Sequence record: PV231353.1
Length of the DNA: 64,000 nucleotides
Reading direction: 5' to 3' (one strand)
Of this stretch, positions 5,146 to 59,204 are shown piece by piece. Under the pieces are notes generated by a model. It did no database searches. It was not told the origin of the DNA and was given only the letters and a program-made list of their open reading frames with translations. Each line of letters starts with the position of its first letter. Positions within the stretch are counted from its first letter, which is position 1. Position numbers and translations under genes: made by a program.

Positions 5146-5922
5146 ATGGCGATCCAGAACCCCCATTCCACCACGCCCGGCACCATGCCGCACCTGACGC
5201 CCGGCGAGGTCGGCGTCAACAAGGCCGACGACATTCTCTGGTTCCGCTCCCAGGGCCGGCGCGTGCCGATCATCCTGAGCGACCTCACCCGCGCCCCGCC
5301 GGCGGACGGCTATGTGGGCGCGCCCCTGGCCCTGGAGGGCGGCGCGCCGGTCTGGAACGTCAAGCTCTTGCCGTCCTCGATTGTCGCCGGCGCGGTCAAG
5401 GTCGACCTGCCGCCCGCCGCCGGCCTGCACGCCATGCCCAGCGTCCTGCTCCAAGGCCTGGGAACCGACCGCGTCCTGGCGGCCAACGACCTGGACCTCA
5501 CCCCCTTCTATGTCCGCTCCGACTCCATCACCCTGACCCATTTGGCGTTCAGCGTCCGCTCGGCTGGCGCGCCGGCCATGCGCGTGGGGATCGTCGACAG
5601 CTTCGGCGTCGTCCAGGCCGACATCTTGGTCGCCGCGCCGGTCGTGGGCGCCAATGTCGTGGCTCTCTCGCCGGTCCTGACCCTTCAACGCGGCGTCTAC
5701 CGCACCATCCTGGCGACGACCGGGGCGGTGACCGTGGGAATCGCCACGGGCGCGCGCATGGAGCAGGGCTGGGACATCATCGCCGACGCCCCGTCGTTCA
5801 TCCGGGGCTACAGTGGCAGCAAGAACACCGGCGGCGGTATCGGGAGCCTGCCGACGCTCACCCCGCGCCGCGACCCCGCGCCGGGCCAGGATCACGCCGT
5901 CCTCTTGCGCTGGACGGCGTGA
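5146..5922 (+). CDS. Putative virion structural protein (third paralogue)
   Basis: ATG at 5146, 2 nt after the previous TAA, inside track ORF 4720..5922; carries PHLTPGEVGVN and LQRGVY motifs. Confidence 0.85.
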   Translation: MAIQNPHSTTPGTMPHLTPGEVGVNKADDILWFRSQGRRVPIILSDLTRAPPADGYVGAPLALEGGAPVWNVKLLPSSIVAGAVKVDLPPAAGLHAMPSVLLQGLGTDRVLAANDLDLTPFYVRSDSITLTHLAFSVRSAGAPAMRVGIVDSFGVVQADILVAAPVVGANVVALSPVLTLQRGVYRTILATTGAVTVGIATGARMEQGWDIIADAPSFIRGYSGSKNTGGGIGSLPTLTPRRDPAPGQDHAVLLRWTA

Positions 5923-5953
5923 ATCTTGACACTTGATCCAAATGCGGTTAACC
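5918..5953 (+). promoter_or_regulatory. Promoter with (GT)CGTGAATCTTGAC motif
   Basis: CGTGAATCTTGACA-N15-GTTAAC upstream of the 5985 ORF and the tRNAs. Confidence 0.7.
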
Positions 5954-5984
5954 TGCGCGCTCATCTGGAGTTTCGAGCGCCATC

Positions 5985-6250
5985 ATGGCCGAGCTTGTCC
6001 GCATCTATCACCCCGAGACGAACGAGCCGTTCGACGTGATCCCGTCGACCGCCGAACGTCTGCGCCTGGGTCAAGGTCTGGACGGTCTGGTGTGGCTCTC
6101 GCAGCCCTTCTCCCGCGCCGCTGCCGAAGAGCCGGCGCCGGAAGCCCCAAGGGGCGAGGTCGTAAGCGCGTCGCCGCGCCCGTCTCGGACGAAGCCGAAG
6201 ACGATGGCTGGCGTGACGCGCCGACCGAGGACGCTTCCGAAGCCGCGTAA
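5985..6250 (+). CDS. Hypothetical protein, probably 88 aa with a 1-nt deletion at the C-run 6145-6148
   Basis: Track ORF is 5985..6275. Restoring one C joins it to the frame ending ...KGRGRKRVAAPVSDEAEDDGWRDAPTEDASEAA* at 6250, which has more typical codon use. Confidence 0.7.
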
Positions 6251-6294
6251 GGCGCTTCCCCGTCCACTCTGCTGAAATTCGGTCTCAGTCCCAT

Positions 6295-6370
6295 GTCGGT
6301 CTAGCTCATGGGGTAGAGCGGCGGTCTCCAAAACCGCGCGTGGCAGGTTCGAGTCCTGCGACCGGCGCCA
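6295..6370 (+). tRNA. tRNA-Trp(CCA)
   Basis: Cloverleaf; GCGGT-CTCCAAA-ACCGC; TTCGAGT T-loop; encoded CCA. Confidence 0.95.
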
Positions 6371-6375
6371 TTTCC

Positions 6376-6450
6376 GCGTCCATCGTATATGGGTTATTGC
6401 TTCGCGTTGCCAACGCGACGAACCGGGTTCGAGTCCCGGTGGACGCTCCA
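6376..6450 (+). tRNA. tRNA-Gly(GCC)
   Basis: TCGCG-TTGCCAA-CGCGA; acceptor GCGTCCA/TGGACGC; CCA. Confidence 0.93.
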
Positions 6451-6456
6451 ATCCAG

Positions 6457-6530
6457 GCGGATATAGCTCAAAGGGAGAGCTACTGCCTTCCAAGCAGAAG
6501 ATGCGGGTTCGAGCCCCGCTATCCGCTCCA
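6457..6530 (+). tRNA. tRNA-Gly(TCC)
   Basis: CTGC-CTTCCAA-GCAG; acceptor GCGGATA/TATCCGC; CCA. Confidence 0.95.
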
Positions 6531-6542
6531 AATTTTTCTTCC

Positions 6543-6580
6543 ATGACAAGCTTGACAGCCGTCGAGTTTTGTGAGAGCCT
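6543..6580 (+). promoter_or_regulatory. Promoter class 2 (GCTTGACA-N13-GTGAGAGCCT), copy 1
   Basis: Near-identical layout to 7340-7377. Confidence 0.6.
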
Positions 6581-6589
6581 TCAACCACT

Positions 6590-6652
6590 ATGACGCACCT
6601 CCTGACCCGTTACGAACGCGAGGCCACCGGCCTCGATACCACCACCGCCTAA
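6590..6652 (+). CDS. Micro-ORF MTHLLTRYEREATGLDTTTA (possible leader peptide)
   Basis: ATG directly after the promoter; stop followed by a hairpin with a T-run, then tRNA-Glu. Confidence 0.35.
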   Translation: MTHLLTRYEREATGLDTTTA

Positions 6653-6686
6653 AAGCGGTTCTGGTAACCGAGGCCTTTTGTCATGT

Positions 6687-6764
6687 GGCCCGGTCGTCTA
6701 GCGGTTTGCAGGATTCGTGACTTTCAATCACGAGAGCGGAGTTCGAGTCTCCGTCGGGCCTCCA
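6687..6764 (+). tRNA. tRNA-Glu(TTC)
   Basis: TCGTGA-CTTTCAA-TCACGA; CCA. Confidence 0.93.
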
Positions 6765-6786
6765 CCCCAAAGTCTCCTCTGAGCTT

Positions 6787-6861
6787 GGTGCGTTCGTATA
6801 TCGGTCAATACTCCGGATTGTCGATCCGGCAAGAGGGGTTCGATTCCCCTACGCACCGCCA
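6787..6861 (+). tRNA. tRNA-Asp(GTC)
   Basis: CCGGA-TTGTCGA-TCCGG; acceptor GGTGCGT/ACGCACC; CCA. Confidence 0.95.
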
Positions 6862-6873
6862 GGGCTCCTCCCT

Positions 6874-7032
6874 ATGCCTCTTCAGTCGGGTTCGAGCGAC
6901 GCCGTCGTCTCGCACAACATCGCCAAGCTGATCGACGAAGGCTACTCCAAGGAGCAGGCCGTGGCGATCGCTCTGTCCCAGGCGCGCAAGCCGCGCCGTC
7001 CGAAGGTCTCGCGCGGCTCGCGCCGGCGCTGA
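6874..7032 (+). CDS. Small basic protein [42 protein letters not shown]... (52 aa, below the track cutoff)
   Basis: Resembles the widespread small phage family 'MPLKxGxSxxxISxNI...QAVAIALxxAR' (recognised from memory, not searched). Confidence 0.8.
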
Positions 7033-7103
7033 TCTCGCCTCGCTAAAGCACCCCCAGGTTCCCGGCCTCGTCGTGAGGCCGCCTGCGGTCGCGCGAGGCT
7101 TCC

Positions 7104-7328
7104 ATGACCTTTCTTGATCTTCGTTCGCAGTCGAGCGCCGCGCTCCTGCGCCATGTGTCTTCCCGATCCCCGATGGCGGAAGCGGCTCGCACCGAGTTGC
7201 TGACCCGAGGCCTCGTCCCGCTCCTCACGCGGCACAACGGCTGGCGCCTCGCCCCGAGCGAGCCCTTTCCGCAGCATCTCATCCCGCGCCCCGATCCGCT
7301 CGCGAGGTTCACGTGGCGGGCGGGATGA
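7104..7328 (+). CDS. Hypothetical protein
   Basis: 74-aa ORF in the gap between the small basic protein and the next promoter. Confidence 0.5.
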   Translation: MTFLDLRSQSSAALLRHVSSRSPMAEAARTELLTRGLVPLLTRHNGWRLAPSEPFPQHLIPRPDPLARFTWRAG

Positions 7329-7339
7329 AGATTTTTCTC

Positions 7340-7377
7340 ACGACATGCTTGACATCCGTTTGAAGTTGTGAGAGCCT
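7340..7377 (+). promoter_or_regulatory. Promoter class 2 (GCTTGACA-N13-GTGAGAGCCT), copy 2
   Basis: CACGACATGCTTGACATCCGTTTGAAGTTGTGAGAGCCT. Confidence 0.6.
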
Positions 7378-7470
7378 ACCCAACGTCACGGATCACGACA
7401 CTCTTCGGAGTGCAAAAGCGTGGTCCTTCGTCTTCCCAGGCCGCCAGCGGGCGGCCGTTCGAGAGTCATC

Positions 7471-7608
7471 ATGTTCGCCTTGTCGCATAACAGCCTGAGC
7501 CTGAAAGCCGCCTCCCCGGCGACGCTTTCGCTTGCGCTGTCTCCGACGGCCGCGACGCCCTCGACCAAGCCGACCCACTCGGCCTCGCACTCGACGGATC
7601 ACCTCTAG
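7471..7608 (+). CDS. Ser/Ala/Thr-rich micro-ORF (45 aa), possible leader peptide
   Basis: ATG at 7471 within track ORF 7420..7608; lies between a promoter and a terminator. Confidence 0.35.
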   Translation: MFALSHNSLSLKAASPATLSLALSPTAATPSTKPTHSASHSTDHL

Positions 7609-8962: not shown

Positions 8963-9237
8963 CTTCGATGTTGACACCCGCGACGCGGCCTGTCATACGT
9001 CACGACAGAGCGAACACCCCCGGCCGGGTTTGTTGTCATACCGGGTCGTCACGCCCCGTCGGGGCTCTAGTAGCTCTTCGTGTGGAGTTTTCCGCCTCCC
9101 TCCCAGACAAGGAGGCGGACCCAACCAACATCGCGATCTCCCGTGATCGTCGGCGACGGGCGCCGTCAGAGACCTTTGCCTGCGCGGCTCCGCTGCGGCC
9201 CTGGTCTCGTCCCGACCAAATTTTTTCGTCGTGGTGC

Positions 9238-9266
9238 TTGACACTGCGAAACTGTTCTGCTAGGGT
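9238..9266 (+). promoter_or_regulatory. Sigma70-type promoter
   Basis: TTGACA-N15-GCTAGGG. Confidence 0.7.
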
Positions 9267-10522: not shown

Positions 10523-10857
10523 AGCTTGACGAGCGATGCCGAATCGCTCAGCTTCCCGATTGGCTCTCGATGGGCCGCCACTGCACGCCGCCGGCGCCCT
10601 CCCGGTACAAGGAGGGGCGCACGTCGGCGACGTTCCAACCCAGTTCCGGACGATCTTCGAACGCGGCCTGCCGTGGAGGGGTGCTGGAAGGGCCGGGGTT
10701 GTGGAAACCGTCGAGCATCTCCTACATCCGGATCGGGCCTCCTGGGGGCTCCTCCGGTCAACCAGGGCCTGACCCGACCCCGGAGATGCGCCGTCTACGA
10801 TCACCCAGGACCGTCCTGGCGGTGGAAAGGGTCTGAAATTTTTCTGGCGCTGATGTG

Positions 10858-10886
10858 TTGACACTCCTCGGAGGCTCGGCTAAAAC
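10858..10886 (+). promoter_or_regulatory. Consensus Caulobacter-type sigma70 promoter
   Basis: TTGACA-N15-GCTAAAAC. Confidence 0.8.
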
Positions 10887-11025: not shown

Positions 11026-11040
11026 GTCATGAATCTTGAC
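11026..11040 (+). promoter_or_regulatory. GANTC/-35 motif copy (GTCATGAATCTTGAC)
   Basis: Upstream of the 11110 ORF. Confidence 0.7.
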
Positions 11041-11526: not shown

Positions 11527-11633
11527 GACTTATAGTCAAGCTTGGGTGCCTGCGGCCAGAAGTCGCGCTTCTTGACACCCGATCTGGGCCGGCATAACCA
11601 TAGGGCCATCGTTCCTGGGTGGAGTTTTCCCTA

Positions 11634-11874: not shown

Positions 11875-12741
11875 GTGTCCGAGTCTGCTGAGTTCAACCC
11901 GCTCGACCAAAATCAGTTCCCTCCTCGCCTCACCAAGGCTGCTGCGCGACAGGCGCGGCGCCAGGAGCGCAGCCAGAAAAAGGACCCCACGGCCAACAAG
12001 CCGAACTACAAGGCGCTCGAAGCCAAGACCGAACGCCAACGGCGCTATATCCAGGCCCTCAAGGCGGGTGAAAGCGTCATCGCCATTGGTGGGGCCGGCA
12101 CGGGGAAGACCTACATCCCGTCCCGGCTCTTCGCCAAGAAGCTGATCGAGGCGAAGATCGAACGCCTGATCATCGCCCGCGTCACCGCCTCGCGTCCCAA
12201 GCACGCCCTGGGCTTCCTGCCCGGCAAGCTGGAAGCCAAGCTCGCCCCGTGGCTCGTCCCGGTCATCGAGGGCGTCAAGGCTGAGATGAACGCCCAGACC
12301 TACACGCAGTTGCAGGAAGCCGGCAAGATCGAGTTCGCCTCGTTCGAGCACATGCGCGGCCGGACCTTCGCCGAGTGCTGCGTCCTCCTCGACGAGGCGC
12401 AGAACGCCGACTACAAGGACCTGAAGATGGTCCTGACCCGCTGGGGCGAGAACGCCCAATACGCGGTCACCGGCGACATCGACCAGATCGACGTCGACGA
12501 CTCGGGCCTGGAGACGGTCGTCGACATCGTCGAGACCCACGACATCCCGATCCACGTGATCGAGTTCACCGACGAGGACGTCGTCCGCTCGCCCATGGCC
12601 AAGGCCTGGGTCAAGGCGTTCTCCGCCCATGAGGGCAAGGACGAGCGGGCGCGGCGCTTCCACCGCCCCACTGTCAGGAATCTTGACGTCCTGCCGGCTT
12701 TTATCGATAATGGCCGAGTCACGAAACCCGTGGCGTCGTGA
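11875..12741 (+). CDS. phoH: PhoH-like ATPase
   Basis: GGAGTGKT Walker A, LGFLPG, MRGRTF, LLDEAQN, GDIDQID, DVVRSP motifs. Confidence 0.97.
   Translation: MSESAEFNPLDQNQFPPRLTKAAARQARRQERSQKKDPTANKPNYKALEAKTERQRRYIQALKAGESVIAIGGAGTGKTYIPSRLFAKKLIEAKIERLIIARVTASRPKHALGFLPGKLEAKLAPWLVPVIEGVKAEMNAQTYTQLQEAGKIEFASFEHMRGRTFAECCVLLDEAQNADYKDLKMVLTRWGENAQYAVTGDIDQIDVDDSGLETVVDIVETHDIPIHVIEFTDEDVVRSPMAKAWVKAFSAHEGKDERARRFHRPTVRNLDVLPAFIDNGRVTKPVAS
12673..12687 (+). promoter_or_regulatory. GANTC/-35 motif copy (GTCAGGAATCTTGAC) inside the phoH 3' end
   Basis: 72 nt upstream of the 12759 ATG. Confidence 0.6.
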
Positions 12742-14692: not shown

Positions 14693-14707
14693 GTCGTGAA
14701 TCTTGAC
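14693..14707 (+). promoter_or_regulatory. GTCGTGAATCTTGAC motif, major tail promoter
   Basis: Perfect copy. Confidence 0.8.
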
Positions 14708-23596: not shown

Positions 23597-23611
23597 GTCG
23601 TGAATCTTGAC
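23597..23611 (+). promoter_or_regulatory. GTCGTGAATCTTGAC motif
   Basis: Perfect copy upstream of the distal-tail gene. Confidence 0.8.
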
Positions 23612-29300: not shown

Positions 29301-29838
29301 CGGCGAGCGCTTCCTGTTCCTCGACGAGCGCTCGATCGAGTTCCAGGCCGAGAACCTCGACACCTCGGGCCAGAACCGCTGGTATAAGGCCGTCGGCTCG
29401 GGCATGTCGCTGTTCGAGACCGATCCGATCCAGATCAACTACCAGCCCCGCGACCTCATGCCCTACCGCCCGGCCGACATCCGTCGGGCGGTCGCGGGCG
29501 GCGACGTCACCGTGACCTGGAAGCGCCGCACGCGCTTCACGGCCACGCTCAAGGATGGCACCGGCGAAGTCAGCCTCAACGAAGGCGCCGAAGCCTACGA
29601 GGCCTATGTGCTCGCCGCACCGTACTCGGGCGACCTGTCGCGTCAGGACGCGCCGGCCGTCTACCGCCGCAAATACACCCTGACGAGTCCGAGCTTCACC
29701 TACACGGCGGCCGAGCAGGCGGCCGACGGATTTGACGTGAATCTTGACACTCTGCACGTGGTGATCTATCAGTTGAGTTCGGTTGTTGGTCGGGGTTTCC
29801 CCGGCGCGCGCTCGATTGAGTCCTGGCAGGACTTCTAA
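26362..29838 (+). CDS. Tail tip / central fibre (GTA gp15, lambda J-like)
   Basis: STYG..IP..YGT.R..GN.IW, PAYRGLCYVVF..F.L..FGNRIP and LLRGRRGT motifs. Confidence 0.92.
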   Translation: MAAAIALPIVSAIVSTAISYAFPSDGPRLRDTKVSASTYGNVIPEIYGTARVGGNMIWSKPFTEKKKKKRAGKGGSYYNEYTYYCDFAMAFCRGPVKEVRRIWADGKVIYDTTGGSEVIDNNKYRFRFYPGDETQLPDSLIVEDKGADYAPAYRGLCYVVFDDFALADFGNRIPQIMAEVYAGDEGGAAITDIVPLPSSPVTGGSYQLGQMMIDADRGYFYLVDSVSNPAGTVLRRFLLANGKEDRREIVSIPQTQFPPSVYDSPDLTSVRAVTSKGELLCVFGGVNNYMRIEKLDPYSWQSLGTIGRSYPFAGTPENSLEHSNTNFEISRDEKGNYLCLTLGVFGEYNIFDPSDMSFKAKGEMAGWGGPGTPMYICARQGGSAASRRFYHVTYTGGASLQVCSLNEVLYNHPLDHPGDSQTATSWAFWDEGDPGVVFFYSDGPNRYIAKWSESTGVLAWKTQLRNSDPFCGYGVYGLRARIKDNEFHWVYNKHLFSINTATGQWIDRTFDQDFYKSDNDKTAEQVNDGDKGLLLPRDISEDYVIYDPRRNIVICVGQIQGQNGIVHVGGYTGGKTSVGAIVERLLVSTGQMTSNDYDLTPLYDIPVYGYGYASSTDIKSIIAELRNLFMFDLVESDGRLVARVRGDQDPDAEVPWKLLGSQSGPTPDKADYWKETRMSESDLPASIDLTYSNIDDDYNPSTAKSKRIASPVATMLSRQQVKAECNLVMDATEAKNRVNIMLYTQWEERTQHQTALPWLYANLDASDLISVTMEDGRNYFERIGSIEFGADFSSRLETYGTDSGAYLSDKTGDGGGAGRPTVVPAPKPVVGFILNTPLLRDTHDSGGNFSNWYSAIGAGAPGVFLGGTMFKSANSQDYVDLYQEPESAEWGTVMGVVPSPSHGWFALDWETRITITPAVDFFELESITDDELWEGLNLVMIGDEVLQFRDAVQNADGTWTIWNLLRGRRGTQYACDNHKAGERFLFLDERSIEFQAENLDTSGQNRWYKAVGSGMSLFETDPIQINYQPRDLMPYRPADIRRAVAGGDVTVTWKRRTRFTATLKDGTGEVSLNEGAEAYEAYVLAAPYSGDLSRQDAPAVYRRKYTLTSPSFTYTAAEQAADGFDVNLDTLHVVIYQLSSVVGRGFPGARSIESWQDF
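29734..29748 (+). promoter_or_regulatory. GANTC/-35 motif copy (GACGTGAATCTTGAC) inside the tail-tip 3' end
   Basis: Upstream of the fibre genes. Confidence 0.65.
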
Positions 29839-35202: not shown

Positions 35203-36291
35203 ATGGCCTATATTTTCGTCGACGGCTGCGACAGCGGTAGCAACGCCAATAACACCGTGATGGCTCAGAAGTGGAGTTGGGCCGTCACCAACACGAGCTA
35301 CCTTAACTGGGGCGGTACGGGACGCTTCGGCGGTCAGGCCTACTATGGCGGAGCCACCACGCTCAACATCTATGGCGCCGGGAAAGCCTTCCCGCTTACC
35401 GGGACGGCGGTCGGCACCGATGAGTTCTTCATGGGGTGCAGCCTCTACGCGGCCGGCACGACGAGCGGGGGCTACATCATGGCGTTCCAGAACTCGACTC
35501 CGGTGCTCGATGGGTCGGTCACCTTCAGCACGGGGTCGGCGCCCACCCAATTGTCGATCCGCCTGACCGGTTCGATGACTCTGGCGATCTATCGGGGCGC
35601 GACGCTCCTGGCGACGGGCACCACGGTCCTGACGGCGGGCCAATGGTATCGCATCGAGGCGCGGATCGTGATCTCCAACACCGGGGTGTTCGATATTCGC
35701 CTGAACGGCAATCCCGAGATCACTTTCTCAGGCGACACTTACGATACGGGCGACCAGGGCGTGCGGCAGTTCTGCATCGTTCCGACCGCCAATACCTCCG
35801 CGTCGCTACGTTTTGACGACATCGTGCTCTACAACAGCGCGGCGGTCGAGGGCGAGCCGACGACGTGGCTGGGCGACCTACGGATCGACACCCTGCGGCC
35901 GACCGCCAACGGCGACGTCGTCAACTCCACGCCGCTCTCGGGCGCGGCCTATGCGGCGGTCGACGAGGTGGCCTCCGACGGCGACACCACCTATACCGAG
36001 TCGACCAACATCGGCGACAAGGACCTCTACCAGCTTAGCGACCTGACCGAAACGCCGCAGACGATCCATGCCGTGGTCGTCACCGCGATGGCCAAGTCGA
36101 CGGGCACGACCAACCGGGCGATCAAGCTCAAGGTCAAGTCGAGCGTCGAGGGCGACAGCGCCGCCAAGACCGTGCCGCTGAGCGCCTATGGCGGCCTTCA
36201 AGCGACGTTCTCGCGCGATCCGGCGACGGCGGCGGCCTGGACCGCGACCGCCGTCAACGGCATGCAGGCGGGCTGGCAGGTCGATACCTGA
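35203..36291 (+). CDS. Putative tail-associated lectin-like structural protein
   Basis: 362 aa, beta-rich, GQWYRIE.R motif, DDI..Y motif. Confidence 0.8.
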   Translation: MAYIFVDGCDSGSNANNTVMAQKWSWAVTNTSYLNWGGTGRFGGQAYYGGATTLNIYGAGKAFPLTGTAVGTDEFFMGCSLYAAGTTSGGYIMAFQNSTPVLDGSVTFSTGSAPTQLSIRLTGSMTLAIYRGATLLATGTTVLTAGQWYRIEARIVISNTGVFDIRLNGNPEITFSGDTYDTGDQGVRQFCIVPTANTSASLRFDDIVLYNSAAVEGEPTTWLGDLRIDTLRPTANGDVVNSTPLSGAAYAAVDEVASDGDTTYTESTNIGDKDLYQLSDLTETPQTIHAVVVTAMAKSTGTTNRAIKLKVKSSVEGDSAAKTVPLSAYGGLQATFSRDPATAAAWTATAVNGMQAGWQVDT

Positions 36292-36296
36292 CGAAT

Positions 36297-36311
36297 GTCG
36301 TGAATCTTGAC
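36297..36311 (+). promoter_or_regulatory. GTCGTGAATCTTGAC motif, lysis cassette promoter
   Basis: Perfect copy. Confidence 0.8.
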
Positions 36312-36370
36312 ATCGGCAGGTTTCCGGACCATAGTCAAGACCTTAATTTTCAGCACTTCCGGAATTCAAC

Positions 36371-37012
36371 ATGCGTGTCTCCGACACCGGCCTGAAGCTG
36401 ATCCAGGCCTGGGAAGGTCTGGGCGACGGGAATCCCGCCACGGTCGACCTGGAGCCTTACATCTGCCCGGCCAAGGTCTGGACGGTCGGCTGGGGGCACG
36501 CCCTGAAGACGCCGACCGGTCAGATCATCGATGTCGACGTCTTCGGCGCCGCCAGGGCCAAGGTCCTGGCGGCCGAATCCATGCAGCGCAAGTTCGGCAA
36601 GGGCGCGATCACCCGTGATCAGGCCGTCGCCCTGCTGCGCGAGGATGTCACGGGCTTCGAGCGCTCGGTCGACAAGATGATCGGCGCGGCCGGCGCCACC
36701 CAGGCCCAGTTCGACGCCCTGGTCTCGTTCGCCTTCAACTGCGGTTCGGCCAACCTCCAGTCCTCGACCCTCCTGCGCCTGCACAACGCCGGCAAGCGCG
36801 CGGTGGGCGACGTGTCGATGTCGGCGCTCTGCAAGGAGAGCAAGCTCTCCACGCCGATCGGCAACATCGCCGTGGCCTTCTCGCGCTGGAACAAGGTCAA
36901 CAAGGTCTGGGCGCTGGGACTGTTCCGCCGCCGGCTGTCCGAGGTCCTGGTCTATGGCGGGCATAATCCCGACGAGGCGGTCAAGGCCGCCCAGGGCTTC
37001 AAGGGCTGCTGA
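36371..37012 (+). CDS. Endolysin (phage lysozyme, GH24-like)
   Basis: LI.AWEG, PY.CPA.VWTVGWGH, TQ.QFDALVSFAFNCG, RW.K...GL.RRR..E motifs. Confidence 0.93.
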   Translation: MRVSDTGLKLIQAWEGLGDGNPATVDLEPYICPAKVWTVGWGHALKTPTGQIIDVDVFGAARAKVLAAESMQRKFGKGAITRDQAVALLREDVTGFERSVDKMIGAAGATQAQFDALVSFAFNCGSANLQSSTLLRLHNAGKRAVGDVSMSALCKESKLSTPIGNIAVAFSRWNKVNKVWALGLFRRRLSEVLVYGGHNPDEAVKAAQGFKGC

Positions 37013-38432: not shown

Positions 38433-38469
38433 GTCATGATCCTTGACAGAACGACGATCTTCGAGTATG
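38433..38469 (+). promoter_or_regulatory. Motif variant promoter (GTCATGATCCTTGACA)
   Basis: TTGACA-N15-GAGTATG-type -10. Confidence 0.55.
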
Positions 38470-44760: not shown

Positions 44761-44866
44761 GGGGTCTCGTTCTCGCGTCGAGGCGCGATGCGTTAAAAAG
44801 CCCTGAGAAATCAGGGCCTTAGATTGACAGCAAAGGATGGTTAAGATAGCCTGAGGGGTCCCGAAA

Positions 44867-44881
44867 GTCAAGATTCACGAC
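44867..44881 (-). promoter_or_regulatory. GTCGTGAATCTTGAC motif, nrdA promoter
   Basis: Perfect copy on the - strand, followed by N15-GCTATC. Confidence 0.8.
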
Positions 44882-45785: not shown

Positions 45786-45823
45786 GCTCGGCTCCGGTGA
45801 TGTCGTGTCTCCTGACGATTGAT

Positions 45824-45838
45824 GTCAGGATTCACGAC
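45824..45838 (-). promoter_or_regulatory. Motif variant GTCGTGAATCCTGAC
   Basis: One mismatch to the consensus; 39 nt upstream of ATG 45785. Confidence 0.6.
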
Positions 45839-51888: not shown

Positions 51889-51936
51889 CGGGCGATCTCG
51901 TTCGGGAGTGTCTTGTTAACCAAGTTCCGGATGGGT

Positions 51937-51973
51937 GTCAAGATTCACGACATAGAAAGTCAGGAATCGCGAC
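51937..51973 (-). promoter_or_regulatory. Tandem motif copies (perfect at 51937-51951, variant at 51959-51973)
   Basis: GTCGTGAATCTTGACA-N15-GTTAAC on the - strand. Confidence 0.75.
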
Positions 51974-52634
51974 TTGCGGCCTCGGTCTTGATGATCTCGT
52001 AGATGCGCTGGGCCGACAGGCTGTAGGCCTCGGCCAGTTGCGACACCGGCTCGCCCTTGGCGTAGCAGTCGGCGATCTCGGCGTAGAAGCGCTTCTTGGC
52101 CTCGGCGCGGCGCAGCTTGGCCTCGGGCGCGTGGCGGTCGATGAAGCGATAGATCGCGATCCGGGTGACCCCATAGTCCTTGGCGATCAGAGGCACCGGC
52201 GCGTAGGCGGCGTAATCTTCGATGATGGTGGCGGCGTGGTCGGCGAGGGCCATGGGAATCTCCAGGGTGTCGAGGGCGCGGTCGATCACCACCGCCGCGC
52301 GCTTGGAAGGATGCTTGGTCAGGAAGCCGCAGGGGCGGCCGGCGGCGTAGGGCGGCTCCAGGCCCGCGCAGAGGTACTGGTCGGCGGTCGGGTCCAGCCG
52401 CCAGCCCTCGCGCGTCCCCAGCCACCAGTGCGTCCCGCCGTCGGGGTCGGGAGCGACCATGCCGCGCCAGACGCTGGCCTTGGCGTCGAGCAGATGCCAG
52501 AGCGCCTCGGCGGCGACATAGCAGTGCCCGGCGGTCGGGTTCGAAGCCGTGTACGCGGAACGATAGGGCTCGCGCAGAAGCTCGGGCGTGAGGCCGGCCT
52601 GGACGGCGCTAAGGGATTGGAGCGGCGACAGCAT
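51960..52634 (-). CDS. Cys/His (YunG-like) domain fused in frame to a Mor-like double HTH; internal start at 52253
   Basis: TGATG overlap with the polymerase stop; GHCYV...GGTHWW; C-terminal VSQLAEAYSLSAQRIYEII; GGAG SD 6 nt before ATG 52253. Confidence 0.75.
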   Translation of the reverse strand: MLSPLQSLSAVQAGLTPELLREPYRSAYTASNPTAGHCYVAAEALWHLLDAKASVWRGMVAPDPDGGTHWWLGTREGWRLDPTADQYLCAGLEPPYAAGRPCGFLTKHPSKRAAVVIDRALDTLEIPMALADHAATIIEDYAAYAPVPLIAKDYGVTRIAIYRFIDRHAPEAKLRRAEAKKRFYAEIADCYAKGEPVSQLAEAYSLSAQRIYEIIKTEAASRDS

Positions 52635-54880
52635 CAGTGCGTCTCCGCCCAGGTCCGGCCCCACTTGACGTCGACATCGACCGGCAGGCGGAAGTCGAAC
52701 CGCTCGCCCGCCTCCTTCGCCGCGTCGACGATGTTGCGGCGGCAGATTTCCTTGACCGCCGCATCGTCGCGCACCGCCACCTGCATTTCGTCGTGGACCC
52801 AGGCCAGGACGGCGTAGTCGCCGTGCCAGCCGTGGACCAGCCCGTCGTCCTCGTTGAAGGTCTCGAAGTTGACGCACCAGCCCTTGGCGATCGTGGCGCC
52901 GGCGCCCTGGAGCTTGGTGTTCAGCGCCGAGTGCTTGGCCCGCACGAAGAGATGGCGGCCGTCGAGGGCGTCGACATAGCCGCGCTTGGCTTCGCGCTGC
53001 ACCGACTTGACCACCTGTTGCAGGGCCGGGATGCGCGTCATGATCCGCCGGCGCATTTCCGAGCCCAGGGCCTTGGCCTTGGCGACGTTCATGGTCAGCG
53101 ACGGGTCGACGGTGCAGCCCAGCTTGTAGTCCTGGGCGCCGTAGATCATGGCGTAGATGAAGGTCTTGGCGGTGTCGCGCGACTCCATCTCCATGGCCGC
53201 TTGGTGGACGCCGTGGACGTCGCCGTCGAGCACGATCTTGCCGTACTGCCCGTTGTCGAACTCCGCCATGAAGTGGGCCAGACAGCGCAGTTCGATACCG
53301 GCTTGGTCGGCGCCCATCAGGGTCCAGCCCTCGGGGACGTAGAAGAGGTCGCGGCAGTCCCAGCCGTGATCGCCCTCGCGGCCCTTCATCAGGACCTTCT
53401 TGGTGACCACCTCGCCCTTTTCGTTCAGGGTGAACTCGCCCTCGGGCGTCAGCACCGGGCGGCCCCGGATTTGCTTGCCGTCCGGGCCGAGCAACGGGAT
53501 CGTCTTGGCCTCGTCCTTCCATTGCGGCGGCGACTTGAAGACGACGCGCGGGACCTGGGCGATGTTGGGGTTGGAGTGCGAGGCCCGGTTGGTCACCGTG
53601 CCGCCGACATTGACGCGGCCGTGAATTTTGCCGTCGCCGTTCCACTCCTCGCACTTGACCAGCCAGCCGTTCTTGCCGTCGACCAACTGCCCCAGGCGCT
53701 TCTTGTAGTAGAAGATTTCCGCCAGGGTCTCGCAGATCGGGATCACCAGCTTCTTGGTGTTCTCGTCCTCGGCCTTGGCCAGATCGCGCAGCACTTCGTC
53801 GTCCACCACCGGCGAGCCGGTTTCGGTGAACTCCTGGGGTTGCCAGCCATAGACCTTGGTCAAGCGGTCGATGATCTGCGGACGCGAGTTGGGGTTGAAC
53901 TCGGTGATCTTGACCGGGCAAAACGGCGCGCCGGCGGTGCGGTCGCCCTTCATCGGGTCCTTGTACTTGACATCGCGCGTCGGGACCGTCACCTCCGCCC
54001 AGTGCTCGCGGCTGTCGTCCTCGCCGAATTCGGGGCGCGGCTTGTAGGCGACCTGATCCTTCTCGGGCTTGCCGGTCTCGGGCGAGGTGTAGGTGGTCGA
54101 CTTGTGGCGCTTGAGCCACTTGCCCGGCACCCACCAGGAGCCGAAGTGCGCGATCGCCTCGTCCGACATCTTGGTGTGCGCCGTGCGCAGTTCTTCTTCC
54201 AGGCGACGCGCTCGCTCGCGGTGGAACGGGAAGCCGTTGCGCTGCACCCGCTCCATCATGTCGTGGATCATGTGTTCGAGCGTGATCGCGGTCTTGGACC
54301 ACGGCCGGCTCTCGATCTTGCGCCACAGGGCCTCGGTGACCTCGACGTCCTGGATCGCGTAGTCTTCCATGTCCTGGTTCCAGGACCCCCAGACGTACTT
54401 GCTGATCTCGGCCTTGTCGGTGATGCCCTTGGCCTTGGCCTCTTCCTCGGCCACGTCGGCGTAGTCGCCCTTGGGGAAGCCCAGGCGCTGGCCCCAGGCG
54501 CCCAGTTCGTGCGAGCCGATGTAGCCGCCCCAGAGGTCGCCGCGCTTCCACATCCGGAAGTCGTCGTCCTTGAGGTCGGCGAACAGCATGCGCGTCATCA
54601 CCAGGGTGTCGCGGATGATCCCCTGGGGATTGAACTTGTTGCCATAGACCTTCCACAGGGCCTCGCAGTCGAAGCCGATGATGTTGTGGCCGATCAGCAT
54701 GTCGGCGTCGTTCAGCATCGCGACGCCTTCGAGGATGTTGTCCTCGCGCTTGTTGCGGTGGAAGACCCAACGCTGACGGGTGTCGGCGTCCTTGATCACC
54801 AGGATGTGGATGCGCGTCAGTTGCAGCAGCAGCCCATCGGTTTCAAGGTCGAACAGGAGCCGGCGCTTACGGAGCTTCAT
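52634..54880 (-). CDS. Family A DNA polymerase (T7-like) with 3'-5' exonuclease
   Basis: FDLETDG, GHNIIGFD, Y.IQDV, GADQAGIELR, R..AKTFIYAMIYGA, QGAGA, VHDE motifs. Confidence 0.96.
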   Translation of the reverse strand: MKLRKRRLLFDLETDGLLLQLTRIHILVIKDADTRQRWVFHRNKREDNILEGVAMLNDADMLIGHNIIGFDCEALWKVYGNKFNPQGIIRDTLVMTRMLFADLKDDDFRMWKRGDLWGGYIGSHELGAWGQRLGFPKGDYADVAEEEAKAKGITDKAEISKYVWGSWNQDMEDYAIQDVEVTEALWRKIESRPWSKTAITLEHMIHDMMERVQRNGFPFHRERARRLEEELRTAHTKMSDEAIAHFGSWWVPGKWLKRHKSTTYTSPETGKPEKDQVAYKPRPEFGEDDSREHWAEVTVPTRDVKYKDPMKGDRTAGAPFCPVKITEFNPNSRPQIIDRLTKVYGWQPQEFTETGSPVVDDEVLRDLAKAEDENTKKLVIPICETLAEIFYYKKRLGQLVDGKNGWLVKCEEWNGDGKIHGRVNVGGTVTNRASHSNPNIAQVPRVVFKSPPQWKDEAKTIPLLGPDGKQIRGRPVLTPEGEFTLNEKGEVVTKKVLMKGREGDHGWDCRDLFYVPEGWTLMGADQAGIELRCLAHFMAEFDNGQYGKIVLDGDVHGVHQAAMEMESRDTAKTFIYAMIYGAQDYKLGCTVDPSLTMNVAKAKALGSEMRRRIMTRIPALQQVVKSVQREAKRGYVDALDGRHLFVRAKHSALNTKLQGAGATIAKGWCVNFETFNEDDGLVHGWHGDYAVLAWVHDEMQVAVRDDAAVKEICRRNIVDAAKEAGERFDFRLPVDVDVKWGRTWAETH

Positions 54881-55925
54881 GGAGCACCTTGAGGATTTGA
54901 TCGCCGATCCAGTCCACCATCGGGACGATCAGGCTGTTGCCGACGATGGTCCGGCGCTCGGTGTCCGAGAGCCCTTCGATCGCGGTGTGGCCGACGGGCA
55001 TGCCCATCAGGCGCTCGTACTCGGACACGGTGTGATTGCGGATGCGCCAGTCCTCGCCTTCCTTGACGAGCAGCATGGCGACGCTGGAGCCGCCGCCGGC
55101 CGTGCGCAGGCAGTTGGCGATTACGCCGCGCTCTTCGATTTGCTGGTCGGGGCGTCCGCGAACAGCGAGGGATCGAGCCCGTGGGACAGGGCGGCCGTCA
55201 ATTCCGGCGACAAGGTCCGACCGGCTCGGATCGCGTTGTTCAGGAGGGTCAAACGCCGGGACGGGCTCATGTACAATCCGGCGGGGATCGATTCCGGAGC
55301 GTCGAGTACACGCGACAAGCACAAGCCGGGGGCGGGACTGGGGGATTCCGAACTGGGGACCGTCGAAGACCGTCCAGGCGATCGCGCGGCGCGGTCCCAG
55401 CACATAACCACAGTCCGGCCACCGATTCCCTGCCGTGTCGTCGTCACCTTCGGGCTTTCCGTAGGGATAGAGGGGTTCTCGCTCGCCGGCGAGGCGTCCG
55501 AGGAATTGTCCAAAGGCGTTGTCCTTGTTGGAGAGGAGCTTGACCACGTTCTCGAAGCAGAAGATCGGAGGATCGACCTCGTCGATCACCCGCAGGCCCG
55601 AAAGGGTCAGTTGTCCGCGCGGGTCGGCCAGACCCAGGCCCTTGCCAGCCTCGCTCCACGGCTGGCAGGGGAACGACGCCCACAGGACGTCGACCTTGCC
55701 CTCGTGGGGCGTGCCGTCGATCTGTTCGAGGTTCCCGAGGTTCGGGACGGCCTTCCAGTGCGTCTCCAGGAGACGGATCGGGGCCGAGGCGATCTCGCTG
55801 AAGAAGCGGGCCTTGCCGCCCTTCTTCTCCCACGCCACCGAGGGGACGTCGGCGCCGGAGCAAAGGGTCGCAAAGACCCACGGCGTGACGCCGGAGGCGT
55901 CCGCAGGGGAGGGGTTCGGGGACAT
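54867..55925 (-). CDS. DNA cytosine-5 methyltransferase
   Basis: FPCQPWS.AG catalytic motif, ENV, Q.RPR, E.ERLMG.P, GNS motifs. Confidence 0.92.
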   Translation of the reverse strand: MSPNPSPADASGVTPWVFATLCSGADVPSVAWEKKGGKARFFSEIASAPIRLLETHWKAVPNLGNLEQIDGTPHEGKVDVLWASFPCQPWSEAGKGLGLADPRGQLTLSGLRVIDEVDPPIFCFENVVKLLSNKDNAFGQFLGRLAGEREPLYPYGKPEGDDDTAGNRWPDCGYVLGPRRAIAWTVFDGPQFGIPQSRPRLVLVACTRRSGIDPRRIVHEPVPAFDPPEQRDPSRSDLVAGIDGRPVPRARSLAVRGRPDQQIEERGVIANCLRTAGGGSSVAMLLVKEGEDWRIRNHTVSEYERLMGMPVGHTAIEGLSDTERRTIVGNSLIVPMVDWIGDQILKVLHEAP

Positions 55926-55944
55926 GGCTCTATGGTTAACGGAT

Positions 55945-55962
55945 GTCGTGAATCACGTCAAG
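55945..55962. promoter_or_regulatory. Rearranged motif GTCGTGAATCACGTCAAG upstream of the C5 MTase
   Basis: On the - strand the TTGAC precedes the GATTC half-site. Confidence 0.45.
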
Positions 55963-55980
55963 AAATGTCGTCAACGACGA

Positions 55981-56769
55981 CTAATTCTTGTCGGCGGCGG
56001 GCTGACGCAGGCGCGCGTGCATGGCCTCGATCTCGTCGTCCGACAGCGGCCGGCGGCCCGTGGTCTTGACCTCGCCACGCCAGATGACGTCGGCGAGCTT
56101 GAGGAACGCCTTGGCGAGCTTCTGCTTGTCGGTGTGCCCGATCGCGCGCTGAAGGCCCTCGGGCCAGCGCGGCGGCAGGGCGTAGAAATACATCAGCCCC
56201 GGCCGGGTCCAGACGTCGACGGCGAAGTCGCCCGCCTGCCGCTTTCCCACCGCGAACGACTGGTCGCCCAGCATCGCGACGTTGTTCTCGTCGTAGTAGC
56301 CGATCCCCAGCCTGATCTTGTCGATCTCGCTGTCATAGGCCAGCCACAGGCAGCGCCCATCGCCCAGGGGGACGTTCTCGATCTCCCAGTCCTGGGGATG
56401 GCCCCAGACCGCGTCGTGGGCTTCGCGGATGGCGTCGGCCAGCATGCCGGTGATCGTCTTGGGCGAGACCGAATCCCCGACCACCAGGAACGAGCCGGGC
56501 TCGATCTCCAGGGTCTTGTCGACCCCGAAATGCTCGGCCAGCCGCCCGGCCTTGAACGAGAAGCCCTCGCGCTCGATGCGGTCGGCGATCTCGTAGGCGA
56601 ATCCCGGCTTGAGGTTGAGCGTCATCACGTGCGAGACGTTCAGCCCCGAGGCCGATTCATGCCCGAGCCCGATCTGGATCGAATGGGTCTCGGACGTCAC
56701 CAGGGCGTAGAGGAAGCCCCCGGAGGGCCGGGTCGGATAGGCGACCCGGCGGGAGAAGAGGAGGGTCAT
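55981..56769 (-). CDS. Hypothetical protein
   Basis: 262 aa; in operon order. Confidence 0.8.
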   Translation of the reverse strand: MTLLFSRRVAYPTRPSGGFLYALVTSETHSIQIGLGHESASGLNVSHVMTLNLKPGFAYEIADRIEREGFSFKAGRLAEHFGVDKTLEIEPGSFLVVGDSVSPKTITGMLADAIREAHDAVWGHPQDWEIENVPLGDGRCLWLAYDSEIDKIRLGIGYYDENNVAMLGDQSFAVGKRQAGDFAVDVWTRPGLMYFYALPPRWPEGLQRAIGHTDKQKLAKAFLKLADVIWRGEVKTTGRRPLSDDEIEAMHARLRQPAADKN

Positions 56770-56779
56770 GGGACCTCGC

Positions 56780-58484
56780 TTACAGGCGCCAGTGGCGGCC
56801 GTTGAAGGTGATCAGCGCCCGCTTGCCGTTCGGGTACTGCACGCAGTGGGTGTGCGCCCAGGACGAGGGGCCGGTGTTGTAGCCCATGTCCAGCTTCGAG
56901 GTCGTGCCGGTGTTGTAGGCGCTCTCGAAAATGCCGGGCGAGTGAGTGTGGCCAAACGTAGTCTTCGGGCCGATCTTGGCGAACTGCTGGATGTTGCCGC
57001 GCGAGCCGTTGGCGCCGTTGTGACCGTGGTTGGAGTGCTCGACCCCACCGACGACGCAGGATTCGTCCTCGCGCAGGAACTTCACGCCGTTGCAGTTCCA
57101 GACGTCGAAGGCGTTGGTCATCACCTCCTCGAAGATCGAGAAGTTCTTCTCGCCGGTCCGGATCGAGGCGTAGACCGCCCGCTGACAGGTGAGGAAGAAC
57201 TCGGCATTGACCGGGTCGGCGCGGTAGTCGGCCGTCTTCAGCCACTTGTTGAGCGCCAGATCGTGGTTGCTCTCAACCACCGTGACCTTCGAGTCCGGGG
57301 CCTGCCGACCCAGGATGGTCAGGAACATCGCCACCTCGCGCAGTTCCTGCTCGACGCTTTCGGAGCCCTTGACATAGAGCCGGAAGCGGTCGTGCGGATC
57401 GGCGATGTTGTGGTGGTTGCGCGCCCGGAAGTCGGAGACGTCGTGGACGAAGATGTGCTCGGGCCGCAGGACGTCGATCATCGACGGCGTCGCCACGCTG
57501 CCCCACACCCGGCTCCCGTCGGCCGAGCGCTGCTCGGTCGGGAAGAAGCCGAAGGTGGCGGCCGAGACCTCGGGATCGATCTGCGCCACGTGGACGTCGC
57601 CGGGCGTCAGGCAGGCCACGCGATGGCCCTCGGTGACCACGCCGTCCTTGACGAAGACGTCCAGGTCGTAGAACGAGCCATCGGTGTCGCCCAGAAGGTG
57701 GCGGCAGAAGAACTTGCCGTCCTCGTCGACCTCGACCAGCACCGCGCCCAACTGGTGGTGGAAGCTGGCCTTGATCCCGGCCTTCTTGGGGACGTAGTTC
57801 GGCTTGGTGACCGCGCCCGTCGTCATGATCTGCTTGGACGGGGTGTGCTTCATCGTCGGAACGCTGACGAGTTGCACCTTGGCGTGGGGGAAGATGCCCC
57901 AGCGCTCGCGGGTGTAGGAGTGGAAGCCCGACAGCGGATTCTCGGCCGTGGGGAGGGTGTTCATCTCGCCGCAGAAGTCGATCCGGTCGGCGATCCGCAC
58001 GCGCTCGGCGACGAGGTATTCCATCACCCGCTTGTGGAAGAACGCCGCGTGCTTGGCGTGGTCCTCGAACAGGCGCTTGGAGTAGGTGAAGCCAGCGATC
58101 ATGATCTCGCACGGCGCGTCCTGGCGCAGGTGCTCGGCATAGGCCTCCAGGTTGTCGACGAACTCCTCGTGGATGTGCGTCGAGATCCTGGGCCGAGGAC
58201 AGGATGAACCGCCGGCGCCCGGTGGTCTCATCCACCGGCACGGTCCGGGCGGCGGGCGCCGGGCGGTGCGACAGCGGGTCCTTGCGCATCGAGTAGAGGC
58301 GGTTCTGGAGCGTCGTGCGCTTGACGCTGTACTTGCGCGAGAACGCCCGTTGACCGCCGGCCTTCTTGACCATCGCGTTCAGTTCTTCCGGCGACACCGA
58401 GTAGATGTCGAACGGACCCTCGGCCGGCAGGGCGGCCTTGGGCTTCTTGCCCGCCTTGGAAGCGTGTTCGAACTCAGCCGGCAT
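56780..58484 (-). CDS. HTH + calcineurin-like metallophosphoesterase-type protein, split by a 1-nt insertion at 58184
   Basis: N-part MPAEFEH...RRFILSSAQD (frame of 57273..58685) joins STHIHEEF... (frame of 56780..58231) if one base is removed; GDVH, HD..D, SNHD, HGH.G and GHTHS motifs. Confidence 0.8.
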
Positions 58485-59175
58485 AGAGAAGCTCCGGTTT
58501 GGCGCTGACCGGCTTGGACCACGACCAGACGTACCAAGCATAGGCGAAGCGCGGGGCGCCCTTGGTGCCGGCGATCCAGCGGGGGCGGTGACGAAGGGTG
58601 ACCTTCGCGGTGAAGGCGGGGTGATCGAACAGGTCCGCGCGCGAGCGCGCCGCGTCCCATTCGTGGCGGCAGAGGAAGGCCACAAGGCCCTGGTCGGCCT
58701 CCATCAGGTCCAGCGCGTGGCGCGCGGCGCGCTCGGCGTCCTTGCCGTAGGGCGGGTTGGTGACGATCGCGTCCGGGCGCGGCGGCAGCGGCGTGTTCTT
58801 GCGCTCCTCGCCTTTCTCGTCGACAACCGTCTCGGGGCGGGCCTTCAGCGCGCCCAGGCGGTCGAGGTCGGCCGGTGTCAGCTTGAAGAAGTCCTCGACC
58901 GCGTCGACCTCGAAGCCCTCGTAGCGGTGGATGTCCGTGGCGAGGACCTCCTGCACGAAGGGCTTGAGCGGCGTGGCGATGGCGCCGTTGCCGGCGAAGG
59001 GCTCCCAGGCGAAGAACGGGGCGAAGTCATCGCCCAGGGCCTCGATCAGGGCGTCGAAGGCCGGCCGAGGAGTCGGGTAAAAGTCCAGCGGGGTCCTGGC
59101 ATATCCGGAGGCGCCCAGCATGGAGGGGTCTTTGCGACCAGCATCGGAGAGAGACATGGTCGTGAGGGATGTCAT
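58474..59175 (-). CDS. Amino (N6-A/N4-C) DNA methyltransferase
   Basis: DFYPTP, WEPFAGNG, TDI and IVTNPPY motifs; start may be ATG 59157. Confidence 0.88.
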   Translation of the reverse strand: MTSLTTMSLSDAGRKDPSMLGASGYARTPLDFYPTPRPAFDALIEALGDDFAPFFAWEPFAGNGAIATPLKPFVQEVLATDIHRYEGFEVDAVEDFFKLTPADLDRLGALKARPETVVDEKGEERKNTPLPPRPDAIVTNPPYGKDAERAARHALDLMEADQGLVAFLCRHEWDAARSRADLFDHPAFTAKVTLRHRPRWIAGTKGAPRFAYAWYVWSWSKPVSAKPELLYAG

Positions 59176-59189
59176 GGTTAACGAAGGGT

Positions 59190-59204
59190 GTCAAGATTCA
59201 CGAC
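59190..59204 (-). promoter_or_regulatory. GTCGTGAATCTTGAC motif, MTase promoter
   Basis: Perfect copy on the - strand. Confidence 0.8.

Follow-up and report, generated by a model that had tools for sequence, protein, structure and literature searches.

A dyad-symmetric 15-bp box joined to the −35 element marks the predicted non-early promoters of the phiCbK-like Caulobacter phage RBC57

Phage promoter classes defined by a regulator site at the −35 region are of a familiar kind. In the middle promoters of phage T4, a MotA box replaces the −35 element at approximately −30, together with sigma appropriation by AsiA; the Pm promoter of phage Mu (bound by Mor) and the Mu Pmom and Plys promoters (bound by C) possess a dyad-symmetric activator site that abuts or overlaps a poor −35 element. 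Operators of the phage P1 C1 repressor are scattered over the genome, and the OR and OL operators of phage lambda are bound by cooperative dimers. Here we describe a 15-bp element, GTCGTGAATCTTGAC, that combines a palindromic box with a −35 element and recurs in a 64,000-nucleotide stretch of DNA (the window) from Caulobacter phage RBC57. It appears to define a class of non-early promoters that we term class M. The class M motif strings searched for, full or partial, were not found in the literature on this phage or host, and this instance, together with its two-class layout and its lineage-specific arms, appears to be undescribed.

Among host systems, the closest are the sigma-70 promoters that in Caulobacter crescentus are methylated by CcrM and activated by GcrA (Haakonsen 2015; Wu 2018, 2023); the ccrM and gcrA genes are dispensable (PMC3885167). 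GcrA-regulated GANTC sites are centered at −20±1, at −30±2, or at +5 to +30 (PMC4647560; PMC9976885), the lack of sites further upstream having been ascribed to linker length (PMC9976885). Haakonsen et al. ranked 32 NGANTCN contexts by GcrA occupancy, and AGATTCA was the 32nd (PMC4647560). For phiCbK itself, CtrA-box promoters with a full TTAA-N7-TTAA site have been reported before gp005 and gp018 (Mascolo et al. 2022, PMC9437464). Promoters are not a topic of the phiCbK genome paper, in which the word "promoter" occurs once (PMC3556154). The original prediction, made from the letters of the window, read the element as a GANTC site set against a −35 box and proposed that phage structural, lysis, and replication operons may be gated by host methylation or cell-cycle state, through GcrA, or by a phage activator such as a Mor-like protein.

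The window corresponds to positions 124001-188000 of the RBC57 record (PV231353.1, 208,414 bp), a phiCbK-like phage of C. vibrioides CB15; coordinates below are those of the window unless the record is named. A megablast search with window positions 14000-38000 matched RBC57 at 100% identity, and phiCbK, Magneto, Swift, and the Ccr phages at 96-99%. The window takes in the last part of the head/tail module, 24 tRNA genes in a block, tail and lysis genes on the plus strand, and the replication module on the minus strand. Genome-wide counts refer to the whole RBC57 genome (208 kb), whose sequence reproduces that of the window, with gene positions taken from the annotation of the record. The relatives compared were phiCbK, CcrRogue, Brevundimonas phage Bajun, Colossus, BL9, and Gurke; RBC57, Colossus, and BL9 grow on CB15, and Bajun and Gurke on Brevundimonas.

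Six exact copies of GTCGTGAATCTTGAC are present in the window, compared with 0.00 expected from 100 dinucleotide shuffles, and 21 matches with three or fewer mismatches are found where 1.59 would be expected. The whole genome contains 12 exact copies and 20 with two or fewer mismatches, all between 76.7 and 197.6 kb, and all 20 are co-directional with a same-strand gene that lies 30-230 nucleotides downstream; each is intergenic or falls within the final codons of the gene before it. In an unbiased k-mer screen of the genome, the 9-mer family of the 15-mer was the most over-represented. All six perfect copies listed in the original prediction were recovered, at 14693, 23597, and 36297 on the plus strand and at 44867, 51937, and 59190 on the minus strand, as was every near copy, one of which moves from 5918 to 5916. 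The claim that the copies point toward downstream genes holds for 13 of 13 listed copies, each facing a gene on the same strand, and all 13 are intergenic or lie within the final ~90 nucleotides of the upstream gene. Beyond that list, the window contains copies at 9228 and 11562, a variant at 55945, and partner boxes at 45802 and 55967. Class M copies are confined to the structural, lysis, and replication half of the genome, where the genes they precede include (in phiCbK nomenclature) the portal, major tail tube, and post-tape-measure genes, the endolysin, nrdA, the exonuclease, the methyltransferase/A1-like operon, the helicase, and the tRNA array. An exact-pattern scan of bacterial genomes (596 Gb) gave, among the matches listed, only scattered single matches at chance level, which are uninformative on host promoters.

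The anatomy of these sites is that of a sigma-70-type promoter. In 23 class M sites TTGAC is invariant and the next base is mostly A, and a −10 element of the form TAnnnT is phased exactly 17 bp after the TTGACN hexamer. At this spacing TA occupies hexamer positions 1-2 in 10 of the 23 sites (P ~4e-13, with a genome TA frequency of 1.45%), position 2 is A in 17, and position 6 is T in 15. The −10 signal that had been claimed is therefore present, but its spacing is 17 bp after TTGACN rather than about 15 nucleotides after the −35 box. Only four window sites pass a stricter Escherichia coli-type promoter scan. The promoter reading as such has good support from the consensus −35, the phased −10, the orientation of the copies, and strong purifying selection across phage genera. 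Judged by these sequence features, the 15-mer is a real signature of putative non-early promoters in the lineage comprising RBC57, phiCbK, Rogue, and Bajun.

The same k-mer screen returned a second over-represented family, GTGTTGACA, with 22 exact copies, which we term class E. These promoters have the form GTGTTGACA-N17-CTAGAA and the full layout cTGGCg-N8-GTGTTGACAgcc-N11-gCTAgAAg; downstream come a CGACGACAAC leader, which is conserved, and GGAGG as the ribosome-binding site. They are located at record 5-73 kb, 195175 (minus strand), and 201833 (plus strand), nearly all of them in small-gene arms that diverge from 37 kb, and the genes of these early arms are of unknown function. The sole copy in the window is at 10855..10863 on the plus strand, with GCTAAAAC as its −10. 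Of the promoters in the genome, those of class E match the sigma-73 consensus best, and they are without the class M box; their −10 hexamers are near-consensus, whereas class M has weaker, more variable ones. A class E and a class M promoter stand back to back in the rIIA divergent region. In phiCbK the same 10 class M sites are found, exact or with one mismatch and with identical site-specific variants, and the early region at 135-170 kb contains 11 class E copies and no class M copy. The RBC57 genome thus possesses two sharply separated promoter classes, E in the early arms and M.

The 15-mer is an imperfect palindrome in which 10 of 15 positions are self-complementary. The ideal palindrome would read GTCGTGA-W-TCACGAC, and two changes in its right half produce the TTGAC. 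There are 19 occurrences of the skeleton GTCNNGANTCNNGAC, where 0.3 would be expected; the half-site GTCGTGA alone shows no genome-wide enrichment (49 observed, 48 expected). The sequence within ±70 bp of the 24 boxes contains eight additional perfect GTC-N9-GAC boxes, and seven of the eight lie at exactly ±22 bp, where 0.027 would be expected per offset; GANTC is present in only one of these seven. A genome-wide excess of GTC-N9-GAC (233 versus 123) was discounted as a probable codon-periodicity effect. The variant GTCGTGAATCACGTC at 55945 is one base short of a perfect palindrome, a related box lies near +1 of an early promoter at record 11389, and the upstream half GTCGTGAWTC occurs without TTGAC near the portal promoter. 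Phasing by two helical turns and the presence of boxes over the spacer and the −10 favor a cooperative operator array, and disfavor a monomeric GcrA site or an RNA polymerase contact.

Footprint comparison of eight orthologous promoters in RBC57, CcrRogue, and Bajun (the DNA polymerase of Bajun is 72% identical) separates the element from its surroundings. Over the 15-mer, identity is 99% with Rogue and 92% with Bajun, whereas the flanks of the same promoters are 62-66% identical with Rogue and 33%, near random, with Bajun. Inside the 15-mer, the outer GTC and CTTGAC are kept in eight of eight promoters and the G of GANTC in six of eight. Four exact copies are found in 42 kb of Bajun. AWTC+TTGAC is retained in all Dolichocephalovirinae examined, and the left arm varies by lineage: GTCGTG in RBC57, Rogue, and Bajun, CCAGG in Colossus, GTGACG in BL9, and tgttgt in Gurke. 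In Colossus, full CCAGGAWTCCTGG palindromes, with GANTC at the center, are found at or inside promoters, at approximately −38, −26, and −19 (positions 1013, 18828, 29379, and 30882 of the CcrColossus stretch). On these alignments, the left arm follows the phage lineage and not the host. Because it differs among CB15 phages and is identical across host genera, it would not be dictated by host RNA polymerase, GcrA, or CcrM.

The exact copies in the window are distributed as follows. On the plus strand, the copy at 14693..14707, with the −10 TAGGGT 17 bp on, is 5′ of the major tail tube gene (phiCbK gp092 orthologue); that at 23597..23611 lies in the gap behind the tape measure gene, 5′ of the gp096 orthologue (glycoside hydrolase); and that at 36297..36311, with the −10 CATAGT, is 5′ of the endolysin and lysis cassette (gp104 orthologue). 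On the minus strand, the copy at 44867..44881 (−10 TATCTT) is 5′ of nrdA, encoding the ribonucleotide reductase alpha subunit, and that at 51937..51951 (−10 TAACAA) is 5′ of a Pol III epsilon-like exonuclease gene, with a secondary box GTCGCGATTCCTGAC (three mismatches) at 51959..51973 on the same strand, exactly 22 bp upstream. The copy at 59190..59204, also on the minus strand, is 5′ of the NPPY methyltransferase/A1-like/p262 operon, and its mRNA is predicted to be nearly leaderless, because the start codon is only ~33 nucleotides past TTGAC. The nrdA leader contains, at 44795-44818 on the minus strand, a terminator-like hairpin and T-run between the class M promoter and the start codon; it has a counterpart in Rogue, Bajun, Colossus, and Gurke, and may be an attenuator.

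Near copies with a single mismatch are GGCGTGAATCTTGAC at 5916..5930 (plus strand, −10 TAACCT), 5′ of a small coding sequence and the tRNA array; GTCATGAATCTTGAC at 11026..11040 (plus strand, −10 TAGCTT), 5′ of the gp084 orthologue; GACGTGAATCTTGAC at 29734..29748 (plus strand, −10 TATCAG), inside the 3′ end of a tail protein gene and 5′ of the gp100 orthologue; and GTCGTGAATCCTGAC at 45824..45838 (minus strand), 5′ of a three-gene small-protein operon (gp115-gp113 orthologues). The last has an inverted partner box, GTCAGGAGACACGAC as read on the minus strand, at 45802..45816, 22 bp downstream and overlapping the −10 region. The copy GTCAGGAATCTTGAC at 12673..12687 (plus strand, two mismatches, −10 GATAAT) lies inside the 3′ end of a PhoH-like gene, 5′ of the next gene. 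Three weak plus-strand copies are without GANTC: GTCATGATCCTTGAC at 38433..38447 (three mismatches, GATCC in place of the site, −10 TATGGT), followed by a small conserved open reading frame after the lysis cassette; GTCGTGGTGCTTGAC at 9228..9242, with a good −10, TAGGGT, in the tRNA region; and GTCGCGCTTCTTGAC at 11562..11576, with a good −10, TAACCA, 5′ of the gp085 orthologue. The near-perfect palindrome GTCGTGAATCACGTC occupies 55945..55959, centered at approximately −26 in the spacer of the putative promoter of a C5-methyltransferase/DNA polymerase operon, and its palindromic partner GTCGTCAACGACGAC lies 22 bp away at 55967..55981. The C5 cytosine methyltransferase is encoded at 54867-55925.

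We favor, with moderate confidence, an interpretation of class M as a promoter fused to an operator that would be read by a phage-encoded regulator, for which the N-terminal helix-turn-helix (HTH) of an A1-like protein is the candidate. TTGAC(A) and the −10 would be used by host sigma-73 RNA polymerase, and a phage-encoded, probably dimeric, sequence-specific protein would bind the 15-bp box over the −35 as well as the phased partner boxes. The regulator would set RNA polymerase access at ~20 structural, lysis, tRNA, and replication promoters, and the class E early promoters, which are without the box, would escape it. The motif, the promoter anatomy, the conservation, the 22-bp phasing, and the tracking of phage lineage are observed, whereas the binding of a protein to the box, its identity, and the sign of control are inferred. 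Control may be negative or dual, to which we lean because the −35 is already consensus and because secondary boxes cover the spacer and the −10.

In the form considered here, the interpretation originally put forward is that CcrM or a phage enzyme methylates the GANTC next to the −35 and that host GcrA or its phage homologue reads it, so that the promoters are gated by methylation or the cell cycle. Its premise that most copies contain GAATC is sound: of 23 sites, 20 have GANTC, in each case centered at −38 (TTGACA being taken as −35 to −30) and thus within 40 bp of the presumed transcription start, as at the GcrA/CcrM promoters of the same host, which are likewise of sigma-70 type. GANTC is also depleted in RBC57, with 273 sites (1.31 per kb) compared with 429 (maximal-order) or ~1097 (order-1) expected. 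Where the center base has changed from A to T, at record 108036 and window 51959, GANTC is retained. Many class M −10 elements are weak, and GcrA promotes open-complex formation (PMC4647560). The phage itself encodes a GcrA homologue with a conserved sigma-interacting domain, in the second gene of the leftward early operon (record 36183-36731, minus strand, outside the window), and an NPPY amino-methyltransferase is encoded directly behind the exact copy at 59190. However, the statement that GcrA uses GANTC near the −35 is imprecise in view of the published positions: the class M site at −38 is outside the known GcrA windows, and no class M promoter has GANTC in the −20±1 or −30±2 upstream windows. 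The class M context TGAATCT (equivalent to AGATTCA) is the lowest of the 32 for GcrA, and the high-ranked YGAKTCK is not matched. TGAATCT, the context in 20 of 23 class M boxes, is the fourth commonest of 31 GANTC contexts seen in the RBC57 genome. A 7-bp GcrA site would leave unexplained the invariant GTCGT flank of what is a 15-bp palindromic element, and the phased boxes at ±22 bp, six of seven of which are without GANTC. The outer GTC is better conserved than the G of GANTC, which is lost in Bajun orthologues that read CAATC and CGATC; GANTC is missing at 38433, 9228, and 11562, and in the BL9 and Gurke lineages AWTC+TTGAC persists but the G does not. By tblastn, the GcrA homologue was found only in the phiCbK and Rogue groups and not in Bajun, Colossus, or BL9, yet the exact 15-mer is present in Bajun, and the homologue was for this reason rejected as an obligatory factor. 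Three of the four methyl-pocket residues of host GcrA (R33, N34, and I37; the fourth is G38) are K, S, and C in the phage homologue. Of the original interpretation, the promoter reading stands, whereas gating by GcrA and CcrM is weakly supported, with site position, context, conservation, and phyletic spread speaking against it, and we regard it as unlikely. The central GANTC is a lineage feature and not the primary determinant of the box.

Alternatively, the upstream 10 bp could be an element recognized by RNA polymerase itself, with sigma-73 or alpha contacting it, for example, as an extended −35 or a proximal UP-like sequence; no extra factor would be required, and the GTCGTGAATC arm would simply make promoters strong. 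Such a contact would agree with the register between element and −35, which is fixed in all copies, with the AWTC+TTGAC common to all lineages and both host genera, and with the scores of several copies, 9-10 of 12 against the E. coli promoter consensus. We nevertheless consider it distinctly improbable: the early promoters, which are the best sigma-73 matches, lack the element, the left arm differs among CB15 phages and is the same across host genera, the upstream half is found without TTGAC, and palindromic boxes are located in the spacer and at ±22 bp. That the box is non-transcriptional, serving as a site for tyrosine-recombinase recombination, replication, or packaging, is very hard to credit. 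Its dyad symmetry would fit a DNA-transaction site and a tyrosine recombinase is encoded by all phiCbK-like phages (PMC3556154), but the ~24 copies are all intergenic and co-oriented with downstream genes, each has a phased −10, and they are kept at orthologous gene starts. A DnaA box and sigma-32, sigma-54, and extracytoplasmic function sigma factor promoters were dropped by eye as a poor fit.

The best candidate for a protein that might read the operator is, on sequence grounds, the predicted N-terminal HTH of a protein similar to phage T5 A1, whose first 100 amino acids are encoded at 58185..58484 on the minus strand. The HTH comprises GGQRAFSRKYSV-KRTTLQNRLYSMRKD, and the recognition helix KRTTLQNRLY(S/A)MRKDP is identical in RBC57, Rogue, and Bajun, apart from one S/A difference, and differs in Gurke, Colossus, and BL9, as does the left arm. 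It is the sole DNA-binding candidate encoded in the window that behaves as expected for a reader. HHpred similarity of the A1-like N-terminus to the TyrR DNA-binding domain has been reported (Gill et al., PMC3556154), and T5 A1 co-purifies with RNA polymerase and is required for pre-early transcription shut-off (PMC3556154). PDB sequence searches with the A1 N-terminus and with the NPPY methyltransferase gave no significant match. The latter (~227 amino acids, FAGNG ... NPPY motifs, phrog_799; 58474..59157, minus strand) is the product of the first gene after the 59190 promoter; it is conserved across each of the five lineages examined and has no Pfam match.

Other candidates fared less well. 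The activator proposed originally, the 224-amino-acid "Mor-like" protein encoded at 51960..52634 on the minus strand, is not supported in that role. Its Pfam Mor match scores 25.0 bits against a cut-off of 24.9 and covers the HTH part only, for which HTH_23 scores higher; the protein consists of a NUDIX/YunG-like N-terminal part, with relatives in Myxococcus and Synechococcus phages, and a short generic C-terminal HTH. It is 81% identical between RBC57 and phiCbK and occurs only in the Caulobacter phiCbK and Rogue groups, not being found in Bajun, Colossus, or BL9, and it was rejected as an obligatory factor because Bajun has the exact box. An XRE-type 266-amino-acid protein was rejected because its HTH differs between RBC57 and Bajun despite the identical box. 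A TgrL/XRE (TgrL/RtrA/CdxA) site was also rejected: the core of the published chromatin immunoprecipitation sequencing position weight matrix is CAA[C/G][C/T], whereas the lower strand of the box reads CAAGA, and A has a weight of 0.007 there. Likewise set aside were the small proteins encoded behind the 45824 double-box promoter, two of which are acidic; they have no Pfam match and belong to PHROGs families without known function.

Several observations weigh against the operator interpretation and its candidate reader. The single-sequence model of the A1 N-terminus has three helices with predicted local distance difference test values of 75-88, which is medium confidence; Foldseek returned only non-significant HTH domains, with TyrR 1g2h third, and a Pfam search of the A1 N-terminus gave no match. 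Overall phylogeny confounds the covariation of A1 with the left arm. The A1-like gene is itself preceded by a class M promoter, and in the RBC57 record its reading frame changes at 58183-58185, the first 100 codons (58484-58185) lying in a different frame from what follows. The annotated coding sequence starts at an internal ATG at 58231, and the orthologues in phiCbK (gp126), Rogue, and Bajun are intact; the change may reflect an error in sequencing, a genuine mutation, or programmed frameshifting. The strict register in 20 promoters fits an activator equally well, and GANTC, although depleted genome-wide, is kept at −38 in 20 of 23 sites, which leaves room for a role of methylation. According to phiCbK RNA-seq, replication genes are expressed early and structural and lysis genes in the middle or late period (PMC10688885), and the box is present in both the early replication and the later structural/lysis groups. 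Since both timing groups carry it, a single regulator acting at one site is insufficient to explain timing, and extra inputs must exist.

Methylation may modulate protein binding at the box. As the CcrM site lies at the exact dyad center, class M could be a methylation-sensitive operator at which methylated parental and un- or hemi-methylated new genomes are read differently, although we hold this to be improbable. If it were true, the reader would be a box-binding protein, or the phage GcrA homologue, whose methyl pocket is altered, and methylation by the phage's own NPPY enzyme could likewise alter the reading of the box. An operator of this type would couple ~20 structural, lysis, and replication promoters to phage DNA replication or to the host cell cycle.

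A visible candidate for an extra input is CtrA, whose TTAACC half-sites show a 12-fold enrichment around class M promoters; 13 of 24 of these promoters carry one between −25 and +11. None is present in record 0-70 kb, and 18 of the 40 genome copies are located at record 80-90 kb, the region of the published CtrA boxes. Copies of TTAACC(AT) near class M promoters lie at window 5946-5953, 44839-44844, 51916-51921, 55934-55939, and 59176-59181, and at record 105006, 108082, and 189134. At three double-box promoters outside the window, TTAACC forms the loop of a hairpin just 5′ of the start codon. The published CtrA-box promoters bring the host cell cycle to bear on phiCbK transcription, but they are in another region of the genome and the class M box is unrelated to the CtrA motif. 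Any link of class M to the cell cycle is, on present candidates, better supported through CtrA than through GcrA.

Class M can be set against the phage systems described at the outset. It resembles the Mu middle and late promoters as a non-early set that shares a dyad-symmetric site upstream of or overlapping the −35; the Mu −35 is poor, whereas that of class M is the consensus TTGACA, and the RBC57 "Mor-like" protein matches by its generic HTH only and is missing from Bajun, which has the box. The many operator copies over core promoters recall P1 C1 and the lambda repressor, as do the phased neighbors, which suggest cooperativity. Unlike in those systems, phiCbK is regarded as virulent, its early promoters are box-free, the right half of the class M operator doubles as the −35 in a fixed register, and a repressor is here only a candidate. 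As in T4, a class-specific box near the −35 separates non-early from early promoters served by the same host sigma factor, but class M retains TTGACA and its box reaches upstream to −45.

The window also encodes two structured RNAs. A full-length match to GOLLD RNA (RF02032) is found at window 60224-60710 on the minus strand, at 169 bits compared with a gathering threshold of 150 (E 8e-46), and a tRNA-Lys is embedded in it at 60573-60646; the deposited annotation has only the tRNA. A permuted two-piece transfer-messenger RNA (RF04321, ARAGORN) lies at window 61189-61628 on the plus strand, inside the replication module and with tRNA-Met genes on either side.

PhiCbK is the canonical Caulobacter phage, and its promoters have hitherto been undescribed. 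The transcription map that emerges has three parts: the early arms with class E promoters, the box-bearing class of tail, lysis, tRNA, and replication genes, and the region of the published CtrA boxes. Natural variants separate the methylation site from the protein-binding arms, and both a cis element and a candidate trans factor can be named. Existing RNA-seq data (GSE241057), together with reporters, could show how a virulent phage of 200 kb schedules the use of its genes in a bacterium that serves as a cell-cycle model, and the same data could show whether a phage GcrA homologue acts on phage promoters.

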